From assembly GCA_946965045.2 (NCBI GenBank), contig OX337241.1:2542001-2606000 (forward strand): a DNA stretch of 64,000 bases. Reading direction: 5' to 3'. Under the pieces are notes generated by a model. It saw only the letters and a program-made list of their open reading frames with translations, had not been told where the DNA came from and did not search any database. The stretch is from Epithemia pelagica. Its lineage: Eukaryota > Protista > Bacillariophyta. A program made the position numbers and the translations under genes. Below are positions 4,992 to 62,443 of the stretch, piece after piece. Position 1 is the first letter of the stretch; the number at the start of each line of letters is the position of its first letter.

Positions 4992-5702
4992 ATGTCATGC
5001 ATTATGCGGCAAAGGATCCTGCTGGCATTTTTCCTCCTCACAACCATCCCATCATGGACTCCTGGTACAACAAGCATTGCTTCCGTACTGGCAGAATCAT
5101 TCCATGACCAACAACCAGACATGGACGAATCGTCCTGGTTGACCTTTGCCTTTTTGGAAGACTCCTGTCATCGGTTCAATCACCACCAAGACGACGAGAA
5201 TGACGACCCTGTCACCTTTTCCAGCCAACCAACGGCAACGGCGTGGACGACCACAGGTACTACCACCAACCATTCGACAAACACGTCATCAGCATCTTCT
5301 TCCCCACTGGTTTGTTTGCCTTCCATGGGCATTCAAACGACAACCAATATCGATAACAACGATACTCAAGCTGCTGGTTTGGTCTCGGTTTCCACATTTG
5401 AGGAATTGTGGCCGCATCACCGACAACAGAGAAGTGCCGGCCTTGTAGTGGCCTTGTGGATTCAACCACCACCCATTCCAAAGGAGGACAACGACAAGGC
5501 ACCACAATCCCTCTTGGCCCTGAAACGACCTCAAACCGAATCGTCCTCATCCTTGGGATTGACACCCTGTGATGTCAATCAGGTGGATTTGCAACTGATT
5601 CACCATTACGACCAAAATCAATGGGTCTTGGATGTATGGTTTCGAACGTCCGAAACAGTCTTTGCGGCCTGCCATCGATTGCGCCTCACGTCCACAAGCG
5701 CC

Positions 5703-5737
<35 letters not shown>

Positions 5738-16398: not shown

Positions 16399-19033
16399 AT
16401 GGTACAAGGACTTGGCTTTCTCTCCAAAAAGGTATGTGTCCCTGGAGCTTGTGGTGTGTAGAGAGAATGTGGTTCTGGTTCTCTTGTAGTGACGGTTTGC
16501 TCTCCAAACTGTGGTTTTGGGGAAGAAGAGTTTCACGGCCAAACAAACAAACCTGCACACACGCTCTCACAAGGTTTCGTTTCCCTCTCTTTCTCTCTTG
16601 CGCATGACGTCTCTTTTGGGTGGCATGGTGGATCTTCTGGTTTTGGGACAACGTCTCCTACGATTGTACATCCTACTATGCTATTGTTAGTCGTGGCATG
16701 TCAAGAACATTGCCAATCAAGAAAAGGTATGGTTGGCCGAACAACGACAGGCTCAAGAAGCGGCCAAGGCGGCCGAATTGGCCAAACAAATTCAACAAGA
16801 ACGAGAACAAGAAGAATTGAATCAAATTGCCGGCAAGGCGTCGTCGGCCATGGATCGAGGAATTGATTGGATGTATCAGGATCAACAGGGCGGTGGTGGT
16901 AGTTCGGACCAAGCAGCCGCCCAAGAAGCGGCCGCCCAAGAAGAATACTTGTTGGGCAAGGAATATATACCGTCTCATACAACGACCACGGCGGCCGCCG
17001 ATGCACCGCCCGTGGGGGATTTTGTTCAAGCGGCCGCCGCAACCACCACACCGTCCTGGGCTGCCACTACGACGACGACAACCACCACCACAATGGCGGA
17101 CCAGGAGGATGGCAAACCAGCCGCCAGCCCCAACGAACCACCACCACCACAAGCCTCGGTACCATCATTGGACCCTCCCATGATGACATCTGTCGAGGCT
17201 CAAAATCGAGACTTTTTTCTGCGTCATGAAGATCCCATGTTTGCCGTCGCCCAAGCGGCGCATCAACAACACAAGGAACACACGGCCAAACGACAATTGT
17301 TGGAACGTGTCACGGGTCAACACGTTCAAGTTGTGCCGCGCACGGACCACAAAAACGACACGAATGACACCCCGAAATCCGATACCCAGGAAAACGAACA
17401 AGACGATCGTCGGCGTCGGGAGCGAAGTCGGAAACGAGACAAGAAGAAGCAAAAGAAAAAGAAGAAACGGAAGAAGCATCATCGTCGTCATGGACGAAGA
17501 CGGCATGATCGTGAGGATGACGACGAGGACAGTCGTGGTAGCAGCAGGAGTAGCCAAAGCTATTCGAGTGAAGAAGAAGACAGCGAGTATGATCGTCGAT
17601 CCAGACGACATGGACGACGAGACAAGGATGATGAAAACGAAGAACCACCACCAAGGAAACGACCACGATCTCCAAGTGTTCAGGAAGGAGACAGCAAGCC
17701 ACATTCAGATCGCGCCCGAAATTACCAACGTTCCGAACAAAGGCACTCGGATGTGCGGAACTGGCGGAAAACGGACAAGGAACCAGAGAGAGGAAACGAG
17801 GAACGTCGTCATCCAAGACGAGGGAGGAGTCGCTCACAAGAGGATCGTGCTAGAAGGACTCGAAGTGATTCGGAAGAAGGCCGTCACAGACGGCGGAGAA
17901 CGAGGAGTCGTTCACCAAAAGAGGACCGAAGAAGGAGTAGGAGCCCCTCGCAAGGTCGTCGTGACCACCCAAACAGATATTCTTCAGAGCGTCAGCAATA
18001 CGAACGAGACCGAAACTATTCCCAAGAACGCAATCGTCGTGACCGTAGCTTTTCCCAGGAACGCAATCATCGTGAACGCAGCTACTCCAGGTCACGTCAC
18101 GGGCGCAGCTATTCTCAAGAACGCAATGACCGAAGAAGGAGTTATTCTAGAGAATATGAGAAGGTGAGGGGCGATGACCAAGACCATCGTCGTAGGACGA
18201 CAAGGGGCCCTGAGCATGAGGATGAGTATCGAAAAGCTCGTGGCAAAGATCAGGATGCTCCTCGCCGTAATCACGAGCAAGATCGACATGGGCACGCTCA
18301 TACAATGCATCGACATTCTCATCATCGGGGAGACGCTGACTTTCACAATAATCGTCCAGAGCGATTCGATCATCACAAGGATGGCAGGTATTCTAGACGA
18401 GATGGCCACCGGAGGGACCGTAGTCATTCTCCTCCTGTCAATAGGAAAAGACCTCGATCAGACGAGGAACCAAGTATGTCGCGACAGAAGAAGGATCCGA
18501 ATCGGGGTAATCCAGAGCGAGCGAATAACTATGATGAATATGGTCGATTGCGAAAGACGGCCCCACAAGAGGATGTGACTCAAGATCGAAAGAGTGAAAA
18601 TTCTCACAAGTACCAATCCAAACCTCAAGTGCCAGAAGACAAGGGAGCCCCACCCAAACTTGCTGGATATGGCTTGCAAGGAGAGAAAAAGACTAATAGC
18701 ACAGGACACGATGGCTATCTCGGTCCGGATCGAACCTTGTTGGAACGTAAACGAGAAGCCCGTCATGCCGAACGTGCACAGCGGTATGCGCAAAAGACGA
18801 ATCGATCCTACCGGACACGAGAAGAACGTGAACAAGCACTGGCAGACATGCAGGCCCATGCTCAAGACCGACACCAGAGACGTGAGCAGCAGCAACAGCA
18901 AGACCGTCGTGTGCCCGACGAGTCCAGTCAGGACGACAAGCGATCTACCACTACGGCATCCTTTCTGTACGATGTGAATCGACAAGTACACGGAGCTTGG
19001 ATGGCAGAGAAAGATCGCCGTCGACAGTCATAA
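16399..19033 (+). CDS. CWC25: Pre-mRNA splicing factor CWC25; join(16399..16431,16691..19033), 791 aa
   Basis: Splicing GTATGT(16432)...TTAG(16690) restores the diagnostic N-terminus MVQGLGFLSKK|SWHVKNIANQEKVWLAEQ. Also IDWMY, EEYLLGK, EDPMFAV, a long RS/RD-rich tail and a C-terminal EREQALADM. Confidence 0.92.
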
Positions 19034-19119
19034 ACATCAGGTCTACGACTTGTGCTGTCGGTGTGATACAAAATCTTACGTGATGCGGAGTTGAATTCAA
19101 CCCGTTATTGAGTTATTCG

Positions 19120-19410
19120 TTCGATATGTTTCAAGTGTCATTGAGTTCGAAGCAGGAAATCAAAAGGACTTGGTCAAAACAGAGACAGGTCTAAGATTTC
19201 CCGATATCATGACTCCGATATGTTGCACACGTCACTATATAAAGTACCACCAGGGGTCTCTTTTCCCCTGGTCCTCCTTCAAAAACAGAATCTTCCGTTT
19301 CAAAGGTTCGCATAAAGGCATCTCGAAGCCTGGAAGATGAAGCAATACGTCTATCGGGCAAATTGACGCTTGTCTCATATGATCGCCGCGTTTTGATGTT
19401 AAGCGAAAAA
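19120..19410 (+). repeat. Dispersed repeat A, copy 1 (homologous to 23255-23595)
   Basis: Shared blocks GTTCGAAGCAGGAAATCAAAAGGA, GGTCAAAACAGAGACAGGTCT, ATCTCGAAGCCTGGAAGA, AAGCAATACGTCTATCGGGCAAATTGA. Confidence 0.85.
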
Positions 19411-20284: not shown

Positions 20285-21626
20285 TCAGGCCAGCAAAAAG
20301 AAAGCAGCGGCGAGGGGAAGGGTAATAGTCATGCCGGCAACAAAGCCGGATGCCGAAGACTCACCATCCAATGAAGCGGGATTCTTATTCTCTGGTGCAG
20401 CAGTAGCGTCATCTTCGGGAGGATCCGGAATATCTTCTAGCCCAATCAATTCCCATTCGCAACTTTCGATGGTGCCAGGGGTATTGGTGTATTTTATGTC
20501 CAAGATGGACCAATCCGCTGGATTCGCAGGACACGACAAGCCTTTGCACTGAGGGAATTGTGCGTAGTAGACAAATAAGTTTCCCGCTCCACTACTGGAA
20601 AGTCCAACGCATGTGACTTTCATGGTACCAAACTCCAAGAATTGGTAGTTTGGCTGGGTTTCGCAGTAGGCTTTCCTCTTAGCATTATTCTCCTGCCCCT
20701 CATCGCAGATTATGTCGAGATCCATCACAATGAAAGTATCATTGCCGGACATCCATTGAAACTTGGGCGCATTTCTGCACTCGGGTTCGCTACTTGTGAT
20801 ATTTACCCACTCCTCGTCGGCGGCTCTCAAAGTAGGGAGAGCGTCGATCTGATCGATGCATTCTTCCGAGAGATTGTCGGGAACGATGGCGTCCGCGAGG
20901 TCAACTGTTGGTTCTTCCCCCTCCTCCAAGAATTCCGTGACGCAGGTCGTGGTATTGCCGCCACGCAGAAACAAAAACTCCAAAACATCTTCCGGTGACA
21001 ACTCGGAATCGGAAGGACACGACGGGTCCACGCACTGGACAAAGTCATAGGTGTAGATTAATCTCGGAGCGGGTTCGATGTCGGCGGGGTTTGGTGCGCA
21101 TGTCACTTTGACATTCGGAAACTGGACGGATTGATAGTTGGCGTCGCAAAAGGCGAGGTACGCGGAGTGATCGCAATCCCTTCGGTCAGCTACAAAGGCA
21201 ACGGTGCCATCCTGGTTGGTATTTCGAACAGGGCAGGAAGAAGCGACAGATGCATATGTGGTATTGTATCTGATATCTTCGAGCCACATTCGTTTGGTTC
21301 CATCGATACACTCCTGTGAAAGGGTGAGCTCGGCTCGTCGTCTCGAGAGGGATTTCTCATCAACATCTCGGATGAGATCGGTCTCCGACAAACTTTGGAT
21401 CGTCCTTGGGTAGGAACGGTAGGATTTCAACCCCCCCCCCCCCCCCCCCCCCACAGCTCGAAACTGATCAAACAAGGTAAGACTCGGGATCAATGAAGTG
21501 TTCTATTGAAATGTTGCCCCTTGGGAAACGTACCTCTTCCTTTAGGTCCTCTTGAAGCAAAACAAAAGTCCCATGGCTAAGTGTTCAAAGCGTCGCCAAG
21601 ACAAGAGTACAAGAAGAAAGTTTCAT
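20285..21626 (-). pseudogene. Secreted, probably GPI-anchored Cys-rich protein with two internal 6-Cys repeats; join(21626..21534,21463..20285); TGA at codon 14 (21587-21585)
   Basis: Exon 1 MKLSSCTLVLATL*TLSHGTFVLLQEDLKEE, GTACGT donor at 21533, TGATCAG acceptor at 21464. Repeats LSQECID...MKVTC-like...QC..SCP occur twice. C-terminal SSASG + hydrophobic tail FVAGMTITLPLAAAFFLLA. Confidence 0.75.
21431..21452. repeat. C22 homopolymer (G22 on the coding strand, poly-Gly)
   Basis: 22 consecutive C, located 11 nt into exon 2 of the GPI-protein gene. Confidence 0.9.
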
Positions 21627-22281
21627 GATGCTGATGACCGTCAATCTCTCCGAAAAGGTGACGAGGTTCTTGGTTTCCTTTGCTATGACGTAATGAGAAA
21701 TGAGACCAGAGGCTGAGTGGCCTCTGAGATGGCTCCAGTTCCAGTGAATCGGATATCTCTATCTCCCGGTGCGAGGTCCAGAGTCCAGACTCCAGCCTGA
21801 AGACAACGTCTCACAAATAATTGCGAAAAGCTCAAAATCCAAACACATCCGATTCACTGCAATTAGAGGCATACGAGTACGATCTCAGACCTCAGATGCG
21901 ATGGATTGCGACTGCGACGGAGAAACAAAAAAAATTGTCTCACAAATTAACTCTCAAAATCCAAGCACCGGGAGATAGAGATATCCGATGCACTGGAACT
22001 GGAGCGATCTCAGAGGCCACTCAGCCTCTGGATTCATTTCTCATTACGTCATAGCAAAGGAAACCAAGAACCTCGTCACCTTTTCGGAGAGATTGACGGT
22101 CATCAGCATCATGAAACTTTCTTCTTGTACTCTTGTCTTGGCGACGCTTTGAACACTTAGCCATGGGACTTTTGTTTTGCTTCAAGAGGATCTAAAGGAA
22201 GAGGTACGTTTCCCCAGGGGCAAACATTTCAACACAGCACTCCATTGATCCCGAGTCTTACCGTCCTCTATGATCAGTTTC
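21460..22281. repeat. Long inverted repeat: arms 21460-21772 and 21965-22281, spacer 192 bp
   Basis: The reverse complement of the left arm matches the right arm across promoter, ATG, exon 1 and intron. By eye, 5 mismatches in ~240 bp of promoter plus exon 1, and more divergence in the intron. Confidence 0.93.
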
Positions 22282-22904
22282 ATGCACAGCTTGCAAAACT
22301 TGAACATGATTGACAAGACCGACTCCTTGCTACGAGCCGCCGACTTCCTCCAAGGGGCAAAGATTACTCGGGTGGAAAGAAACAAAAGGGTGACAAGAAT
22401 GGTGGCAAAATGAACCGTTCGGAGTGCAGTCGTGACATTTCGTTTCGATATGGCTCGGGTTTGGCCCTTGCGACTGTCTATTGTCCTGGTTCCTGCATGT
22501 CTGCCGTATTTGATGGACCAAGCGAAACTCATACTTGTGACACGAGCGACAAACGTCAGTCTTGGACAATTCAACCCGTAGCGGGGAGTCCGGCGGTTCA
22601 AATCAAGAGCGATTACACGCATCAGTGCGTCGGTCTAACGGACTGTCGTCCTGGTTTTCCAACGTTTGATGATGAGACACGGCCCCTCGTCGAATCCACC
22701 GCCCTGGACTGTGATGATCCTGACACAGAAATGATCTTCATCAATGGCTTTTTCATGGCATGGAACTGCTGGAAACAAGGTGTAGCGGACTTGTATTTTG
22801 ATCCTTCTGGTGAACTAGAATGTGAACAGGGCATGTTTGATGACGATGGGTTTGGTGGTGGCCTCCTTATGTTTCTTGATCCTTGCGTACTGGACAGTCA
22901 TTAA
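22111..22904 (+). pseudogene. Secreted ricin-B/beta-trefoil-like Cys-rich protein, copy 1; join(22111..22203,22278..22904); nonsense TGA at 22150 and 22311
   Basis: Colinear with the intact paralog at 41984. Motifs CDTSDKRQSWTI, QIKSDYTHQCV, MAWNCWK. Two in-frame TGAs where the 35168 copy has TGT and GGA. Confidence 0.8.
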
Positions 22905-23254: not shown

Positions 23255-23595
23255 AATATTCGTTCACTTTGTTTAAGTGTCATTCAGCAGTTCGAAGCAG
23301 GAAATCAAAAGGAGTTGGTCAAAACAGAGACAGGTCTGAGATCCCCCGAAATCTACAGAAAACGGAAACAACATGCCTCCGATAAGTTGCACACGTCACG
23401 ACATAAAGTACCACCAGGGTGTATTTTCCCCTGGTTCTCCTTCGAGAACAGAATCTTCCTTCTCCAAAGGTTCACAAAAGGGCATCTCGAAGCCTGGAAG
23501 ACGAAGCAATACGTCTATCGGGCAAATTGAGGTATGTCTCATATGATCGCCGAGTGCGTGGTACGTTTTGATGTTAGGCGAAGAAGTTGGCATAT
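23255..23595 (+). repeat. Dispersed repeat A, copy 2 (includes the last codons and 3' UTR of the Tim17-like gene)
   Basis: See copy 1; homology extends to GTTTTGATGTTAGGCGAAGAAGTTGGCATA. Confidence 0.85.
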
Positions 23596-34984: not shown

Positions 34985-36245
34985 CCGCCTCACAAATTAC
35001 GAAACAAAATCCAAGCACCGGGAGCCGGGAGATGGAGATATCCGATTCACTGGAACTCTAAATGCATACGATCTCAGAGGACACTCAGTCAGTGAACTCA
35101 TTATTTCAAACCAAAAGAAGTCAAAAACCTATTCGCCTTGTCGAAAAGATTGACGGTCATCAGCATTATGAAACGTTCTTCTTGTACCCTTATCTTGGCG
35201 ACGCTTTGTACACTTAGCCATGGGACTTTTGTTTTGCTTCAAGACGATCTAAGGGAATGGGTACGTTTCCCGAGGGGCAAACATTTCAACACAGCACTCC
35301 ATTGATCCCGAGTCTTACCGTCCTCTATGATCAGTTTCATGCACAGCTTGCAAAACTTGAACATGATGGACAAGACCGACTCCTTGCTACGAGCCGCCGA
35401 CTTCCTCCAAGGGGCAAAGATTACTCGGGTGGAAAGAAACAAAAGAGTGACAAGAATAGTGGCAAACAGAAGCGTTCGGAGTGCAACCGCAACATTGCGT
35501 TTCGATATGGCTCACGTTTGGCCATTGCGACAGCCTATTGTCCTGGTTCGTGCATGTCTACCGTATTTATGGACCAAGCGAAACTCATACTTGTGACAAA
35601 AGCGACAAACGTCAGTCTTGGACAATTCAACCCGTAGCGGGTAGTCCGGCGGTTCAAATCAAGAGCGACTACACGCATCAGTGCGTCGGTGTAACGGACT
35701 GTCATCCTGGCTTTTCAACGGTTGACGATGCGGCACGGCCCCTCGTCGAATCCACCGCCTTGGACTGTGATGATCCTGACACAGAAATGATCTTCATCTA
35801 TGGCTTTTTCATGGCATGGAGCTGCTGGAGACAAGGTGGAGCAGACTTGTATTTTGATCCTTCTGGTGAACTAGAATGTGGACAGGGCATGTTTGATGAC
35901 GATGGTTTTGGTGGCGGCCTCCTAAGGTTTCTTGATCCTTGCGTACTGGACAGTCGTTAAAGGAAGTGGAACTCTTTGTCACGCAAAGTTATCATCATCG
36001 ACTCGTGACCACGGAAACGTACGAGATGGAAGGGAATTCCATAGGTGGTTAATGGTTAAGCAACCAAGAGTAGGAGGAAATCAGGGTCTATTGGTTCTGG
36101 GAGAACTGAAGCCAATGATGCATAGAAAACTACTCCTAATGAAACTTCTCGTGAGTATTGAATGGTAACAGCCTGTAGCACAGATAGTCCCATATGCCTT
36201 TATCACACGCCGATCGCCGAAACTCTCATAGAAAGCGTGTTTTGG
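34985..36245 (+). repeat. Segmental duplication of ~21935-23195 (ricin-like gene plus flanks)
   Basis: Colinear identity from TCACAAATTA..CAAAATCCAAGCACCGGGAG through the CDS to AAGAGTAGGAGGAAATCAGGGTCTATTGGTT and GAAAGCGTGTT. Confidence 0.9.
35168..35960 (+). pseudogene. Ricin-B-like secreted protein, copy 2; join(35168..35260,35335..35960); 1-bp deletion after 35568
   Basis: Intact signal exon MKRSSCTLILATLCTLSHG. GTATTT-ATGGACCA here versus GTATTTGATGGACCA in copy 1 explains the split into ORFs 35257-35637 and 35481-35960. Confidence 0.8.
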
Positions 36246-37234: not shown

Positions 37235-37628
37235 GTCGCACAAGTTATAGGTATCCGATCGAGTCGTCTCGATAAGGAGTACACCTTCTTGTGGTTGATT
37301 CACTTAACACACCGTAGACAAGACTCGAACTATCATAACTAGTTCTCTAGCTAGGTATGCTATAGAAGACGAGATTGGCGCCATTGACCATGACGGGACT
37401 ACCAACATTGGCTTACATGTGAGAATCAAAGATACATGAGAGAACCTGTGGTCATTGGGAAATGGACAATCATCCAAGGATACGTACAGGATACGTAGCC
37501 AAGGTACATTAGAGATATGACCCAGTAGATCCTCGTAGCCTTAGTACATTTGGGAAGAAATGCACGTAGGATCTCTGTACCCAGTACTGGGGATAATAAC
37601 CTAATGTGGCAGCAAAGACAGCCATGGG
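37235..37628 (+). repeat. LTR-like direct repeat, 5' copy
   Basis: Matches 41027-41414 apart from a few substitutions and small indels (e.g. an extra CTAG). Confidence 0.9.
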
Positions 37629-38907: not shown

Positions 38908-41026
38908 TTACTAGATCTTACTCCCTCCGGCCTTTTTTTATCGCACGAAGTTGAGAAAAATGACATAACGTCTCGAGCGTCAGCCCATTCGCGCTAAAAA
39001 TTATATAGATCGAAAGCTTATTACTAGACTCAAATTTCCATGTATAATTTTTATGTTCCATCTCACAATCCTGAAGAGCTACATGGAACTAAAAGAGGCT
39101 AAAAACGCAATCCAAACTTTGGCGTACCGGTTCTGGCCCCCCAGGCGCACCCAAGGGATGGCACCCTCCAGCCAGGCCCGCGAGGGGGTAAAGTACATAG
39201 ACTTGCCGGCTAATGACTGTGGACGTTCTATAGACATTCATCTATCCTTCCCCATCTGAATGGCACCTTGCCAGAGGTGTTTTGTCTTTCGTCGCCAAAA
39301 TTTTTGGAGTTCATCGATCCATCATAAGTAGGCTATGAGAGTGCGCAGAGCAACTCGCACGCGGTGGACTTAATTAACTCCCCCGAAATTTCATCCAACG
39401 CACGCGCGCGTGGTCGATTCCTATGTGTTTTTCGACTGCTGTTACAAAAGCGGTTAAAAGTGTAACGCGATAGAAGGATAGTTAAGTTGTGGTGCGTGTC
39501 ACATTGAATGTTCATCTCTAAAATTCGACTCCGAATGAGCCGGCCATCCTCCTGTAGAAATGTACCAGGTCCTACGACGGATGTTTATGCGACTGATTTT
39601 TCGAAAAATAGATCGTGCGATAAAAAAAGGCCGGAGGGAGAGTAGCTACCAAGAGTTTGTTGACTGGCGTGACCAATTTTCCGTCAATCATCAGTATCTA
39701 GATCCTGATCTACCTCTTCCAAGTCTAGTCCTACGAGATGATTCTGATCACACGTGTGACATCATCGCGAAACAGATATCTTCGGCTGACAGACGGACCA
39801 TATTCGGATTCAAGATTACACTCAAGACTAAAAACTATGTTGTCTTGCGCAACCACATTAATATTAGGTATCCTCGCTTTGGATACCCACATGGAGTACA
39901 GCACGAATATCATGGTGGCAAAGCATTTGGACGCACATAGAGAATCAAGCCTGGCTCTGTATCTGGAACCCAAGTAGGTATCCAAGACAATGATCATGGC
40001 AACGCAACTGGGGCAAAGCTGGGAGACAATGGCAACCCAATTGGGGCAGAGCTGGGAAATCTATCTGATCACTTGGCTAGACCTAAAGTGAGAGTTCAGA
40101 ATGATGGAATAGAGATGAACCAAGATGATGGTTCTTGTAATATCAAGCATGAACAAATCATGGGTAACCTTTCATCTAGCTATGCTGGCAATGGAGTCAA
40201 CGAAGCCTTGAACAATCCTAAAGCTAGCTATGATGGCAATCAACTTGGAGTCAAGATCGATCACACTAGTTCTAGCTATTTAGCATCGCTTGGAGAGAAG
40301 CTAGTTCTATCTAGATCAATCTCGCAACCAAAATGCAAAGAGGGGGTGACAGTTCCAAAGAATTCCCCTTCAGCAGCAAATGGGGGAGCACTAGTTCTGG
40401 AAAAAGACCTTCCAACATCAGAAAGGGGGGCAATATGTTTGGAAAAAGACCAACCGGATGAACACGGACAGAGAGCTACTTCGCACTATGTTGACTACCC
40501 AAATAGAGTCGAATGGGGAGAAGTAAACTATGATGGCAATGGAAGTGGAGCTCAGAAGGGATATCATCGTTGTGATGATGATTTTATTGATGGAGAAGAC
40601 TCAGGAATGGAGGATTATTTTGATGAACATAATATTAGCCATGAAATCATTTTTCTAGACGATCATGATGGAATCAGCAATGGCTACATTATCAATCTCC
40701 TCTTCATCCACAAGATGAAACATAGAGGACGATCACTACCTTTTGTGACGACAAATTCATCAGAGGCATGTGGAGGCAAACACATCTATCATAAAGGAAA
40801 TGATGGACTTAGATTTGGCATGCCATGGGGAGACAATATGGGGAGAAATTTAAAGAGTTGGAGAAAACTAAGTCCTAGGGGACCTATGGTTTTCTGTGTC
40901 AATGCTAGCATGACTAGCCGAGCTATGCGTTCAATGACAAATGTTCATTATGGACGAGAAATTGGGGAGAAATCAAGATTTGTTGGAAATTTGTTTGATT
41001 TGGTGTGTAAATCTGAATCAAGGGGA

Positions 41027-41414
41027 GTCGCACAAGTTAAAGGTATCCGATCGAGTCGTCTCGATAAGGAGTACACCTTCTTGTGGTTGATTCACTTAAC
41101 ACAACGTAGACAAGACTCGAACTATCATAACTAGTTCTCTAGGTATGCTATAGAAGACGAGATTGGCGCCATTGACCATGACGGGACTACCAACATTGGC
41201 TTACATGAGAATCAAAGATACATGTGAGAACCTGTGGTCATTGGGAAATGGACAATCATCCAAGGATACGTACAGGATACGTAGCCAAGGTACATTAGAG
41301 ATATGACCCAGTAGATCCTCGTAGCCTTAGTACATTTGGGAAGAAATGCACGTAGGATCTCTGTACCCAGTACTGGGGATAATAACCTAATGTGGCAGCA
41401 AAGACAGCCATGGG
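41027..41414 (+). repeat. LTR-like direct repeat, 3' copy
   Basis: Matches 37235-37628. Confidence 0.9.
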
Positions 41415-41983: not shown

Positions 41984-42827
41984 ATGAAGTTTGCTTCCAT
42001 TCTCATCTTTACGACGCTTTCTTCCCTGGCGCGTGCAAACTTCTTGCCTATCGAGGAGGGTCTAAAGGAAGAGGTATGTTCGAAACAAGTGAAGTTGCCG
42101 AACGACGAGATGGTTCATCTGGAGTCTTACCGATCTTGACTTTTCCTAGATTGATGCGGAGCTTCGCAAGCTTGAAGAACAGGGATATTACGAACCTCTT
42201 GTGAATCGTCATCGCAAACTCCCATATTACAGGGGCGAGAAGGACTCAAGTAGTGACAAGGACGACTCGAGCGGCAAGAAACAAAAGGGTCACAAGAAGG
42301 TTGCAAAGACGGGAGACCGTTCCTCGAAGTGCAACAGTGACATCTCATTCCGCTTTGACTCTGGTTTAAACCTTGGAACACAGTACTGCGCTGGCTCTTG
42401 CTTGTCGGCTGTGTACGATGAACCGCCCCTCATTCTTCCCTGTGACGCAAGTGACAAGAGTCAGTCCTGGACGATTCAGCCTGTTCCTGGCAGTCCGGCG
42501 GTTCAAATCAAGAGTGACTATACGCATCAATGCGTCGGTCTCCCCGAATGTGTCCCATGCCATCCTCTGGGGTGCAATATACCTGAGGATGAGGAGTGCG
42601 AGCAGGAGTTGATTCGGTCTACGTCCATGGACTGTAGTGATCCTAACACGGAAATGGTTTTCGTTCGTGGGTCCTTCATGGCATGGAACTGTTGGAAAGA
42701 AGGCATTGCCGATTTGCACTTTGATCCAGCAGATGATCATTACTGTGAATCAGGCACATTTGATGACGATGGCCTATTCGGTGCTCCCATCCTGTTTCTT
42801 GATCCTTGTGTCTTCGATAATCATTAA
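41984..42827 (+). CDS. Secreted ricin-B/beta-trefoil-like Cys-rich protein, intact copy; join(41984..42073,42150..42827), 255 aa
   Basis: Signal MKFASILIFTTLSSLARA, GTATGT...CCTAG 76-bp phase-0 intron, pro-region ending RKL, then LPCDASDKSQSWTI, QIKSDYTHQCV, MAWNCW. Confidence 0.8.
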
Positions 42828-48673: not shown

Positions 48674-48704
<31 letters not shown>

Positions 48705-60968: not shown

Positions 60969-61267
60969 CAGAGCCTAGCCTTTGCCTAGATACCTAACTA
61001 CTAGCTACACATATAGCACCTAGTATTCCAGTCGCACGTAAACTCCAAAAGCGACCCACAAATTTCTCCTCCACCACCAAATCACGTCACAGTGACATAC
61101 GAAGAACAATGGACACAAAATCACAGAAGAACGCTGAAAATTAGATTTTCCTCACACAACAACCACACGAAAGATATACTCTCCCACTTTTGTGATCACT
61201 TTTTGACGATAGAGTCATAGAGTGCCTCATCCAACTCACACCAACCCCCAACGCCCCAAAAAACACA

Positions 61268-61306
61268 CAGCAGCAGCAGCAACAACAACAACAACAACAC
61301 AACAGC

Positions 61307-61397
<91 letters not shown>

Positions 61398-61430
61398 CAA
61401 CAGCAACAACAACAACAACAGCTACAACAA
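61268..61430. repeat. (CAA/CAG)n microsatellite with ~30 uninterrupted CAA (61306-61395)
   Basis: Read directly. Confidence 0.95.
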
Positions 61431-61848
61431 ACAGGCGAACACAAAGAGAATCATTTCCTTTTTCAAATTGGAAAGGTGCTAGGTAAGCCAAGTCGACAAG
61501 ACAACAGTGAGAGTTCATTTTGTCGTTTTCCTATATGCCCACTAATCATTTTCTTCTGTTTCCATGAAAACCCAACCATGTGATCGCTGTTTGGCAACTA
61601 TTTCTTCCCTCCTATCATCCCACAAGACAATTTTCAACGCTCTGAACGACTGGATTGGTGGTTCTGTTTGAAAAAGGGCGAAGACACCAAGTTGGTGCAC
61701 CCATTTCATTCTCCCATCAATTTCCATCGACCAAAACTGGTTGGATTGCTGGATTGCCGCTACTTCTTCCCTCCTATTATCCCATAAGACCATTTTCAAC
61801 AATCTGAACGGTCGGATTGGTGAGGATTCTATTGAACAAAGGGCAAAA

Positions 61849-62443
61849 GACACCAAGTTGGTGCACCCACTTCCTTCACCCCTCCATCTCCATCGACCAA
61901 GACCCTGTTGGATTGCTGTGTTGCTACTCCTTCTTGATTGGAACGAGGGCCTAGACACCAAGTTGGTGCACCCATTTCCTTCACCCCTCCATTTCCATCG
62001 ACCAAGACCCTGTTGGATTGCTGTGTTGCTACTCCTTCTCAATTGGAACAAGGGCCGAGACACCAAGTTGGTGCACCCACTTCCTTCACCCCTCCATTTC
62101 CATCGACCAAGACCCTGTTGGATTGCTGTGTTGCTACTCCTTCTCAATTGGAACAAGGGCCGAGACACCAAGTTGGTGCACCCACTTCCTTCACCCCTCC
62201 ATTTCCATCGACCAAGACCCTGTTGGATTGCTGTGTTGCTACTCCTTCTTGATTGGAACAAGGGCCTAGACACCAAGTTGGTGCACCCATTTCCTTCACC
62301 CCTCCATTTCCATCGACCAAGACCCCGTTGGATTGCTGTGTTGCTACTCCTTCTTGATTGGAACAAGGGCCTAGACACCAAGTTGGTGCACCCATTTCCT
62401 TCACCCCTCCATTTCCATCGACCAAGACCCTGTTGGATTGCTG
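61849..62443. repeat. 105-bp minisatellite, ~5.7 copies, preceded by diverged ~167-bp related units (~61580-61848)
   Basis: GACACCAAGTTG recurs at 61849, 61954, 62059, 62164, 62269 and 62374, and at ~61682 (167 bp earlier). Confidence 0.95.

Follow-up and report, generated by a model that had tools for sequence, protein, structure and literature searches.

Can a diatom genome keep a portable leader, that is, a promoter, signal-peptide exon and intron that pass as a unit from one gene to another, in front of unrelated secreted proteins? The question is raised by a locus of Epithemia pelagica at which two genes, here called X and A, each begin in one arm of a short inverted repeat. The DNA analyzed (the window) is a stretch of 64,000 nucleotides (nt) of contig OX337241.1, GenBank assembly GCA_946965045.2 (positions 2,542,001 to 2,606,000 of the forward strand), and positions given below are counted from its first nucleotide unless another sequence is named. 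A first-pass annotation of the window read the repeat as one promoter, signal exon and intron driving two unrelated secreted proteins, and saw in it a candidate for an undescribed system of leader exchange and co-regulation. We find that the locus is a single event, with no reusable cassette system. Its history is probably that of a one-time replacement of the 5' end of X by a small inverted partial duplication, the window allele having later been disabled by gene conversion.

The inverted duplication itself lies where it had been annotated. Its arms (21460-21772 versus 21965-22281) align over 317 nt with 95% identity and 4 gaps, on either side of a unique spacer of 192 nt. The identity is unevenly spread: the inner 259 nt of the repeat are 98% identical, the intron part just 85%. 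Proceeding toward its gene, each arm has an upstream stretch of about 146 nt, then an ATG with a 93-nt exon, then an intron of 70-74 nt. The exon ends in GAG, the intron begins with GTACGT and ends with gatcAG, and the phase is 0. Similarity between the arms stops 4 nt beyond the gatcAG acceptor, at 21460, also in agreement with the annotation. A 37-nt probe for the leader found 0 matches by chance in 100 shuffles.

The layout of promoter region, ATG, 31-codon exon and phase-0 intron is thus as described, but the exon is not open. In both arms of the window, exon 1 reads MKLSSCTLVLATL, then a stop, then TLSHG..., the stop being an in-frame TGA at codon 14 (Table 1). Neither of the units said to be driven by the palindrome has an open leader, and with the TGA in exon 1 of both arms, no signal peptide is deliverable from either arm in the window.

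What, then, is gene X, and how did it come by such a leader? X is a single-copy gene in the 60.5-Mb genome, and a search for paralogues found none. In its protein, two repeats rich in Cys, each some 160 residues long, are accompanied by a hydrophobic tail at the C-terminus (...SSASGFVAGMTITLPLAAAFFLLA) that, judged by inspection, reads like a glycosylphosphatidylinositol (GPI) type tail and is conserved in the orthologue. A Pfam search with X returned no family. The model of the X orthologue is mixed alpha/beta, with a predicted local distance difference test score (pLDDT) of 62.7, and a fold search with that model gave no match in PDB at E <= 0.001. The closest relative of X is P0002, an intronless gene on L010 with 62% identity; P0003-P0005 are more distant. 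Each of these relatives starts with a signal peptide of its own, in an intronless 5' end, and none of these signal peptides is related to the leader found in the arms.

The DNA homology of X to its orthologue extends from beyond the stop codon to 21434, ending at a run of G (21431-21452, read on the strand of X) and at about codon 32 of the orthologue. That the homology sets in directly behind this run means that X had its original 5' end replaced. The promoter and signal peptide native to X are therefore gone, their exact place being occupied by the inverted copy of the 5' end of A. A search for the native 5' end of X elsewhere in the genome, using the first 1290 nt of the orthologue and made with no positive control, returned nothing.

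The clusters of X, of A and of one further gene of the window, C, each include a second sequence, from contig ctg1277l of the same ENA assembly. We take ctg1277l to be the other haplotype, because it can be aligned collinearly with the window (96-98.6% identity) and is absent from the primary genome. Its junction between leader and X (21453-21463 in the window) equals that of the window base for base except for the length of the G run, and the substitutions specific to the X-side intron are common to both as well. The fusion is therefore real, predates the split of the haplotypes and is no fold-back artefact. An origin in assembly, with a fold-back or a chimeric read making both palindrome and homopolymer, was an outcome that the annotation had itself foreseen as fatal to its claim. 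The homopolymer lends the idea some color, as long G/C runs are error-prone and the run measures 22 nt in one version of a single haplotype and 30 nt in another. But imperfect arms (with their 4 gaps), a unique spacer between them, and the recurrence of the X-side intron substitutions and the exact junction in an independently assembled contig make this the least probable of the explanations considered here.

In the second haplotype, exon 1 on the X side (L011, 9829-9921) is intact: it reads MKLSSCTLVLATLCTLSHGTFVLLQEDLKEE, with TGT at codon 14. The intron is 70 nt long, with its gatcAG acceptor at L011 9992, the G run measures 6 nt, and the exon 2 sequence, FRAVGGLKSYRSYPRTIQ..., leads into X in frame. 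Nothing is damaged in ATG, donor, acceptor or frame. The A-side arm of this haplotype carries the TGA in exon 1. The earlier statement that the left arm leads into a GPI-type Cys-repeat protein is borne out insofar as X is Cys-rich, has a GPI-like tail and shows the same junction in both haplotypes, but in the window the leader in question is stopped.

The junction is composed of the first bases of the exon 2 that belongs with the leader, followed by sequence native to X. The donated arm reaches 4 nt, or possibly about 9 nt, into exon 2 of A; it is 95% identical to the 5' end of A and brings a phase-0 intron, which in the second haplotype is in frame with X. The G run that follows is in frame with 22 nt in the window and with 6 nt in the second haplotype, and out of frame with 30 nt in ENA contig ctg1341l, which represents the same haplotype as the window and is otherwise identical to it over 13 kb. 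With 22 and 30 nt reported for one haplotype, the frame across the junction is untrustworthy in that haplotype. Perhaps a run of this kind within the first codons of exon 2 (6, 22 or 30 nt) acts as a length-variable frame switch for X, but we consider this less likely. C/G homopolymers of at least 20 nt occur at about 55 loci in the genome (an estimate from 139 overlapping matches), and, as the length of the run at 21431-21452 varies between assembly versions, other long runs may vary too.

To whom does the leader belong? Searching the genome with the leader DNA gave 3 matches: the two arms and a gene called B. When exon 1 of B, of C and of the X-side arm in the second haplotype were made into a profile, a genome-wide search with it found just the four known copies (two arms, B and C), the next match having E = 0.11 over 12 residues. 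A, B and C form a three-member tandem family, with members found by the genome-wide search within this window alone. The exon 2 sequences of A and B match that of C in codon-for-codon register from the first codon (FHAQLAKLEHDG versus IDAELRKLEEQG). Since this register is reached via gatcAG, gatcAG is the native acceptor of the family. The leader is native to A, B and C. The design had been reported to repeat at 35168 and 41984, and the copies are present there, but as paralogues of A and not as independent uses of the leader.

The family itself has not fared well. A is a pseudogene in both haplotypes, with the TGA in exon 1 in both. A second TGA in A (22311-22313) stands in place of a Gly codon and is absent from exon 2 in the second haplotype. 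B is open in exon 1, having TGT at the codon where A has TGA, but is broken in exon 2 by a 1-nt frameshift near 35568 that is common to both haplotypes (P0011, P0012). C is the one intact member. Open versions of exon 1 are found only in the X-side arm of the second haplotype, in B and in C. Reading the TGAs as selenocysteine codons or by an alternative genetic code was considered and rejected: X ends with a TGA where its orthologue stops, the second TGA of A replaces a Gly codon, and selenocysteine in the core of a signal peptide would make no sense.

In the A/B/C proteins, a stretch of about 50 residues containing a Q-x-W motif (QSW) matches the Pfam family CDtoxinA (PF03498), at positions 62-112 of the 149 in the profile only. 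Against a cut-off of 22 bits, the open reading frame (ORF) of A scores 26.5, P0010 26.3, P0012 19.2, intact C 17.1 and P0006 12.7; RicinB_lectin_2 (PF14200) reaches about 16 bits against a cut-off of 25.6. An AlphaFold model of C made from a 6-sequence alignment was unusable (pLDDT 29.5), a profile search of PDB with C gave no match, an Atlas feature search gave no usable match, and a word-index protein search found no relatives outside this assembly. The family may be called ricin-B/CdtA-like, weakly. The QSW stretch matches one lobe of the beta-trefoil of ricin-B lectins and of the CdtA/CdtC domain; the family differs from these in that the profile match is partial, intact C falls below the cut-off, and no PDB sequence matches. 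The leader on the right does head A, as annotated, but A is broken by its TGAs and its ricin-B label is weak. That the two payloads are unrelated is upheld as far as it can be tested: BLASTP finds no similarity between X and C, and the X orthologue is modeled as mixed alpha/beta.

With these results, the notion of a portable cassette can be judged. On this notion, the promoter, signal peptide and phase-0 intron would be exchanged recurrently among genes, and the palindromic promoter would co-regulate two of them. It finds some encouragement in the one unrelated payload, X, that does stand behind the leader, in the phase of the intron, which suits shuffling, and in the many genes for exported proteins of Plasmodium that have a similar arrangement of a signal in exon 1 and a phase-0 intron (PMC1431722). 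But if the module were exchanged, several payloads should follow it, and by both DNA and profile searches the leader is confined to the two arms, B and C, leaving only one foreign payload. The leader has thus moved onto an unrelated gene once, onto X, and recurrent exchange finds no place. Elsewhere it is followed only by ricin-like genes, close to the result that the annotation had said would speak against it. Co-regulation by a bidirectional palindromic promoter is likewise unlikely as a designed feature: the window arms are both nonsense-mutated, A is dead in both haplotypes, and in the second haplotype some 25.7 kb, retrotransposons included, come between the X arm and the A arm. A recurrently exchanged, co-regulating cassette is accordingly very improbable, a little less so than an artefact of assembly.

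The interval between the arms of the second haplotype contains at least two Copia-type (RVT_2) ORFs. A Copia retrotransposon with long terminal repeats (LTRs) of the form TG..CA and a 1702-aa RVT_2 ORF (L011, 3567-9661) sits in the X-side promoter of this haplotype, bounded by a 5-bp target duplication, TCTGG, whose empty site is found in the window at 22027-22031. A 68-nt tandem duplication of the X-side promoter adjoins the insertion. The spacer sequence of the window (21785-21964) lies in the second haplotype upstream of the X-side leader and points toward X, so its orientation relative to X is opposite in the two haplotypes, and the upstream segments are mosaic. The second haplotype (L012, at 9854) is without the equivalent of window positions 22003-22097, about 95 nt of the proximal upstream region of A.

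Why, then, do both arms of the window carry the same stop? We compiled a five-way table of variable sites from the X and A arms of the window, the X and A arms of the second haplotype, and B. At six consecutive variable sites (21585-21669, TGA included), the X arm of the window is of the A type and differs from the X arm of the second haplotype. On both flanks of this tract, it shares side-specific states with the X arm of the second haplotype; the outer flank is marked by side-specific site 21731 and two private sites at 21704-21705, and the inner flank by at least 10 side-specific sites (21505-21427). Because B and the X arm of the second haplotype agree on TGT, TGA is the derived state of A. 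Identity between the arms within a tract, an orthologous arm that is different, and flanks that are side-specific make up the pattern of a short conversion tract, between 85 and 158 nt in length, copied from the A arm to the X arm in the window haplotype. A simple reciprocal crossover between the arms was also considered as the origin of the TGA on the left and was rejected, because the right arm is without X-type sites.

We therefore favor the following history, which we regard as probable. A, B and C share one native design: an upstream region, a signal/pro exon of about 31 codons and a phase-0 intron. A piece of the 5' end of A, some 320-500 bp comprising upstream region, exon 1, intron and the first bases of exon 2, would have been duplicated in inverted orientation and fused into the neighboring X at about codon 32, with deletion of X's own promoter and signal peptide. 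If the captured exon 1 was spliced to the gatcAG acceptor that came with it, the product would have been a complete, secreted, GPI-tailed chimeric X, for which the frame is still open in the second haplotype. A would subsequently have decayed, acquiring the TGA at codon 14 that is seen in both haplotypes. In the window haplotype, where the arms are only 192 bp apart, the conversion tract (85-158 nt) would have copied the TGA of A into the leader of X, and the G run at the junction would have grown from 6 to 22-30 nt. Insertions of retrotransposons part the arms of the second haplotype by about 25.7 kb, and there the X leader kept its TGT.

Several observations weigh against this account. The case for conversion rests on one shared derived site (the TGA) and five sites close by; an excess of private changes together with back-mutation in the X arm of the second haplotype would be an alternative, though an unlikely one. 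Use of the promoter, splicing at gatcAG and secretion of chimeric X are read from the sequence, as is the status of ctg1277l as a second haplotype, both contigs coming from one ENA assembly. X evolves in nearly neutral fashion, with a ratio of nonsynonymous to synonymous substitution rates (dN/dS) of 0.83-0.85 relative to the orthologue and 0.64 between haplotypes. The arms have diverged by about 6.6% in the second haplotype and by about 15% in the intron part in the window, from which one calculates that under neutrality, ignoring indels, the ORF had a 5-21% chance of remaining open since the capture, which makes the open frame a weak argument for function. The promoter on the X side of the second haplotype is disrupted by the Copia element. 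The unlike orientation of the spacer in the two haplotypes and the mosaic upstream segment (u2) make the order of inversion, conversion and deletion at the center of the palindrome ambiguous. Finally, the chimera may never have been functional.

This last point leads to the main competitor, a dead scar of rearrangement. X would have been truncated, the chimera never expressed as a secreted protein, and the gene would now be a decaying pseudogene in both haplotypes, with the open frame of the second a matter of luck. The near-neutral dN/dS and the appreciable chance of escaping a stop are both in keeping with this, as are the clear breakage of the window allele, the pseudogene status of A and B, and the interruption of the X-side promoter in the second haplotype by the Copia element and the tandem duplication. 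Decay, however, sits poorly with a protein that keeps all 14 of the 14 Cys columns invariant in its family and that has neither stops nor frameshifting indels over 381 codons in either allele, and with a junction in the second haplotype that is intact in ATG, donor, acceptor and frame. We judge the scar unlikely, though far less so than a cassette or an artefact.

The chances that the TGT allele of the second haplotype works are about even. Should it do so, the locus would display a polymorphic swap of signal peptides, accomplished with a neighbor's promoter, leader exon and phase-0 intron, in which a dead donor poisons the captured leader of one haplotype by gene conversion within the palindrome while transposons shield that of the other. 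This fuller picture we hold only tentatively, at somewhat less than even chances.

Table 1. Positions of the parts of the X/A locus and of the paralogues of A in the window. Gene callers without intron models were the source of P0001 and P0008.
Feature	Position	Strand	Evidence
Gene X exon 2, stop included, 393 codons	20285-21463	-	ORF; native first ~33 codons missing
C/G homopolymer at junction, read as poly-Gly	21431-21452	-	length varies
Fusion junction: first bases of A-family exon 2 (TTTC, then GAGCT) and X-native sequence	21453-21463	-	five-way arm alignment
Left-arm intron, 70 nt, GT..gatcAG, phase 0	21464-21533	-	X-side-specific substitutions common to second haplotype
Left-arm exon 1, 31 codons, in-frame TGA 21585-21587	21534-21626	-	translation
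Left-arm upstream region, putative promoter	21627-21772	-	arm alignment; promoter function inferred
Spacer, 192 nt, further upstream sequence of leader unit	21773-21964	+	haplotype comparison
Right-arm upstream region; 22027-22031 (TCTGG) is the empty Copia target	21965-22110	+	haplotype comparison
Right-arm exon 1 of gene A, in-frame TGA 22150-22152	22111-22203	+	TGA also in second haplotype
Right-arm intron of gene A, 74 nt, GT..gatcAG, phase 0	22204-22277	+	acceptor matches copy C register
Gene A exon 2, second TGA 22311-22313	22278-22904	+	second TGA in window haplotype only
Gene A residual ORF, 164 aa, leaderless	22410-22904	+	partial CDtoxinA / ricin-B-like match
Paralogue B	35025-36178	+	89.6% identical to A
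Paralogue B exon 1, intact	35168-35260	+	translation
Paralogue B intron	35261-35334	+	
Paralogue B exon 2	35335-35961	+	translation
Paralogue C	41984-42827	+	only intact family member
Paralogue C exon 1 (30 codons)	41984-42073	+	
Paralogue C intron	42074-42149	+	
Paralogue C exon 2	42150-42827	+	

Other elements lie around the locus. In both haplotypes the pair of X and A is flanked by direct repeats (19114-19388 and 23257-23552), each about 300 nt long, with 83% identity; they were considered as transposon ends and set aside, since the genome has only two copies and nothing was found that ties them to the palindrome. Between 24700 and 31900, on the minus strand, are long ORFs of 472, 588, 485 and 549 aa in a region with a GC skew of +0.3 and an AT skew of -0.4, one of the ORFs matching RVT_1 at 29.3 bits, just below the cut-off of 29.6. 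The region is probably a retroelement of about 7 kb, and it is present in both haplotypes. Between B and C are two direct repeats of 394 nt (37235-37628 and 41027-41414), 97.7% identical and 3.8 kb apart, which look like a pair of LTRs; the ORF within the pair (40073-41134) has no match in Pfam. An ORF of 766 aa (16733-19033, plus strand), extremely rich in Arg, Ser, Glu and Asp and with arginine/serine (RS) like repeats, is found in both haplotypes and looks, by its composition, like a splicing-factor-type protein. Dense tandem arrays fill 61257-62443, with a short period at 61257-61430 and units of about 105 nt at 61828-62443, and the trinucleotide-type repeat of this region recurs at 5702-5737 and 48674-48704.

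How does the locus compare with what is known? Conversion between arms is familiar from the ampliconic palindromes of the human Y chromosome, and conversion from a pseudogene is known to import nonsense mutations into a gene, as from CYP21A1P into CYP21A2. The E. pelagica case resembles these in that a short, nonreciprocal tract (about 85-158 nt) renders the arms identical and carries a disabling mutation out of a dead copy. It differs in the shortness of the arms, about 317 bp, and in that they head different genes, so that it is the leader of an unrelated gene that is damaged.

Chimeric genes produced by partial duplication or illegitimate recombination provide a second comparison (Hun Hunaphu of Drosophila, PMC1463047; review of partial and chimeric duplicates, PMC3449122). 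The likeness consists in the fusion of a partially duplicated 5' end with its regulatory sequence to the body of another gene, the two being joined where homology is slight or absent. Here, unlike there, the duplicate lies in inverted orientation, copy and donor together making a palindrome with a short spacer, and the recipient lost its 5' end, so that no extra gene resulted. The locus is, in sum, a clear single instance of known processes and calls for no new category. The palindromic arrangement is not conserved between the haplotypes.

The third comparison bears on the origin of targeting signals. 'Semi-exon shuffling' has been proposed for the plastid presequences of diatoms (Kilian and Kroth 2004, J Mol Evol 58:712, as that paper is cited in PMC1431722 and PMC3017844). 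In the PEXEL exportome of Plasmodium, the signal sequence lies in exon 1 and 93% of the first introns are in phase 0, and exon shuffling has been called the most parsimonious mechanism by which exported proteins acquired it (PMC1431722). The leader of X is similar: a signal on a first exon of its own, followed by a phase-0 intron, placed before a gene that pre-existed in one exon. The differences are that this is a single event whose donor and junction can be seen, together with an orthologue that has the native leader, and that one signal peptide for the endoplasmic reticulum was exchanged for another, with no new destination and no radiation through a family.

Proposals of presequence exon shuffling, in diatoms as in Plasmodium, rest mostly on the positions and phases of introns rather than on observed events. 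Here one sees side by side the gene that gave the leader and the gene that received it, the exact point at which they are joined, an orthologue that keeps the original leader, and two alleles, one open and one knocked out; the idea of exon shuffling is therefore directly testable at this locus. The locus also points to a cost of such capture: a copy that stays near its donor, in a palindrome, can import the defects of that donor by gene conversion.

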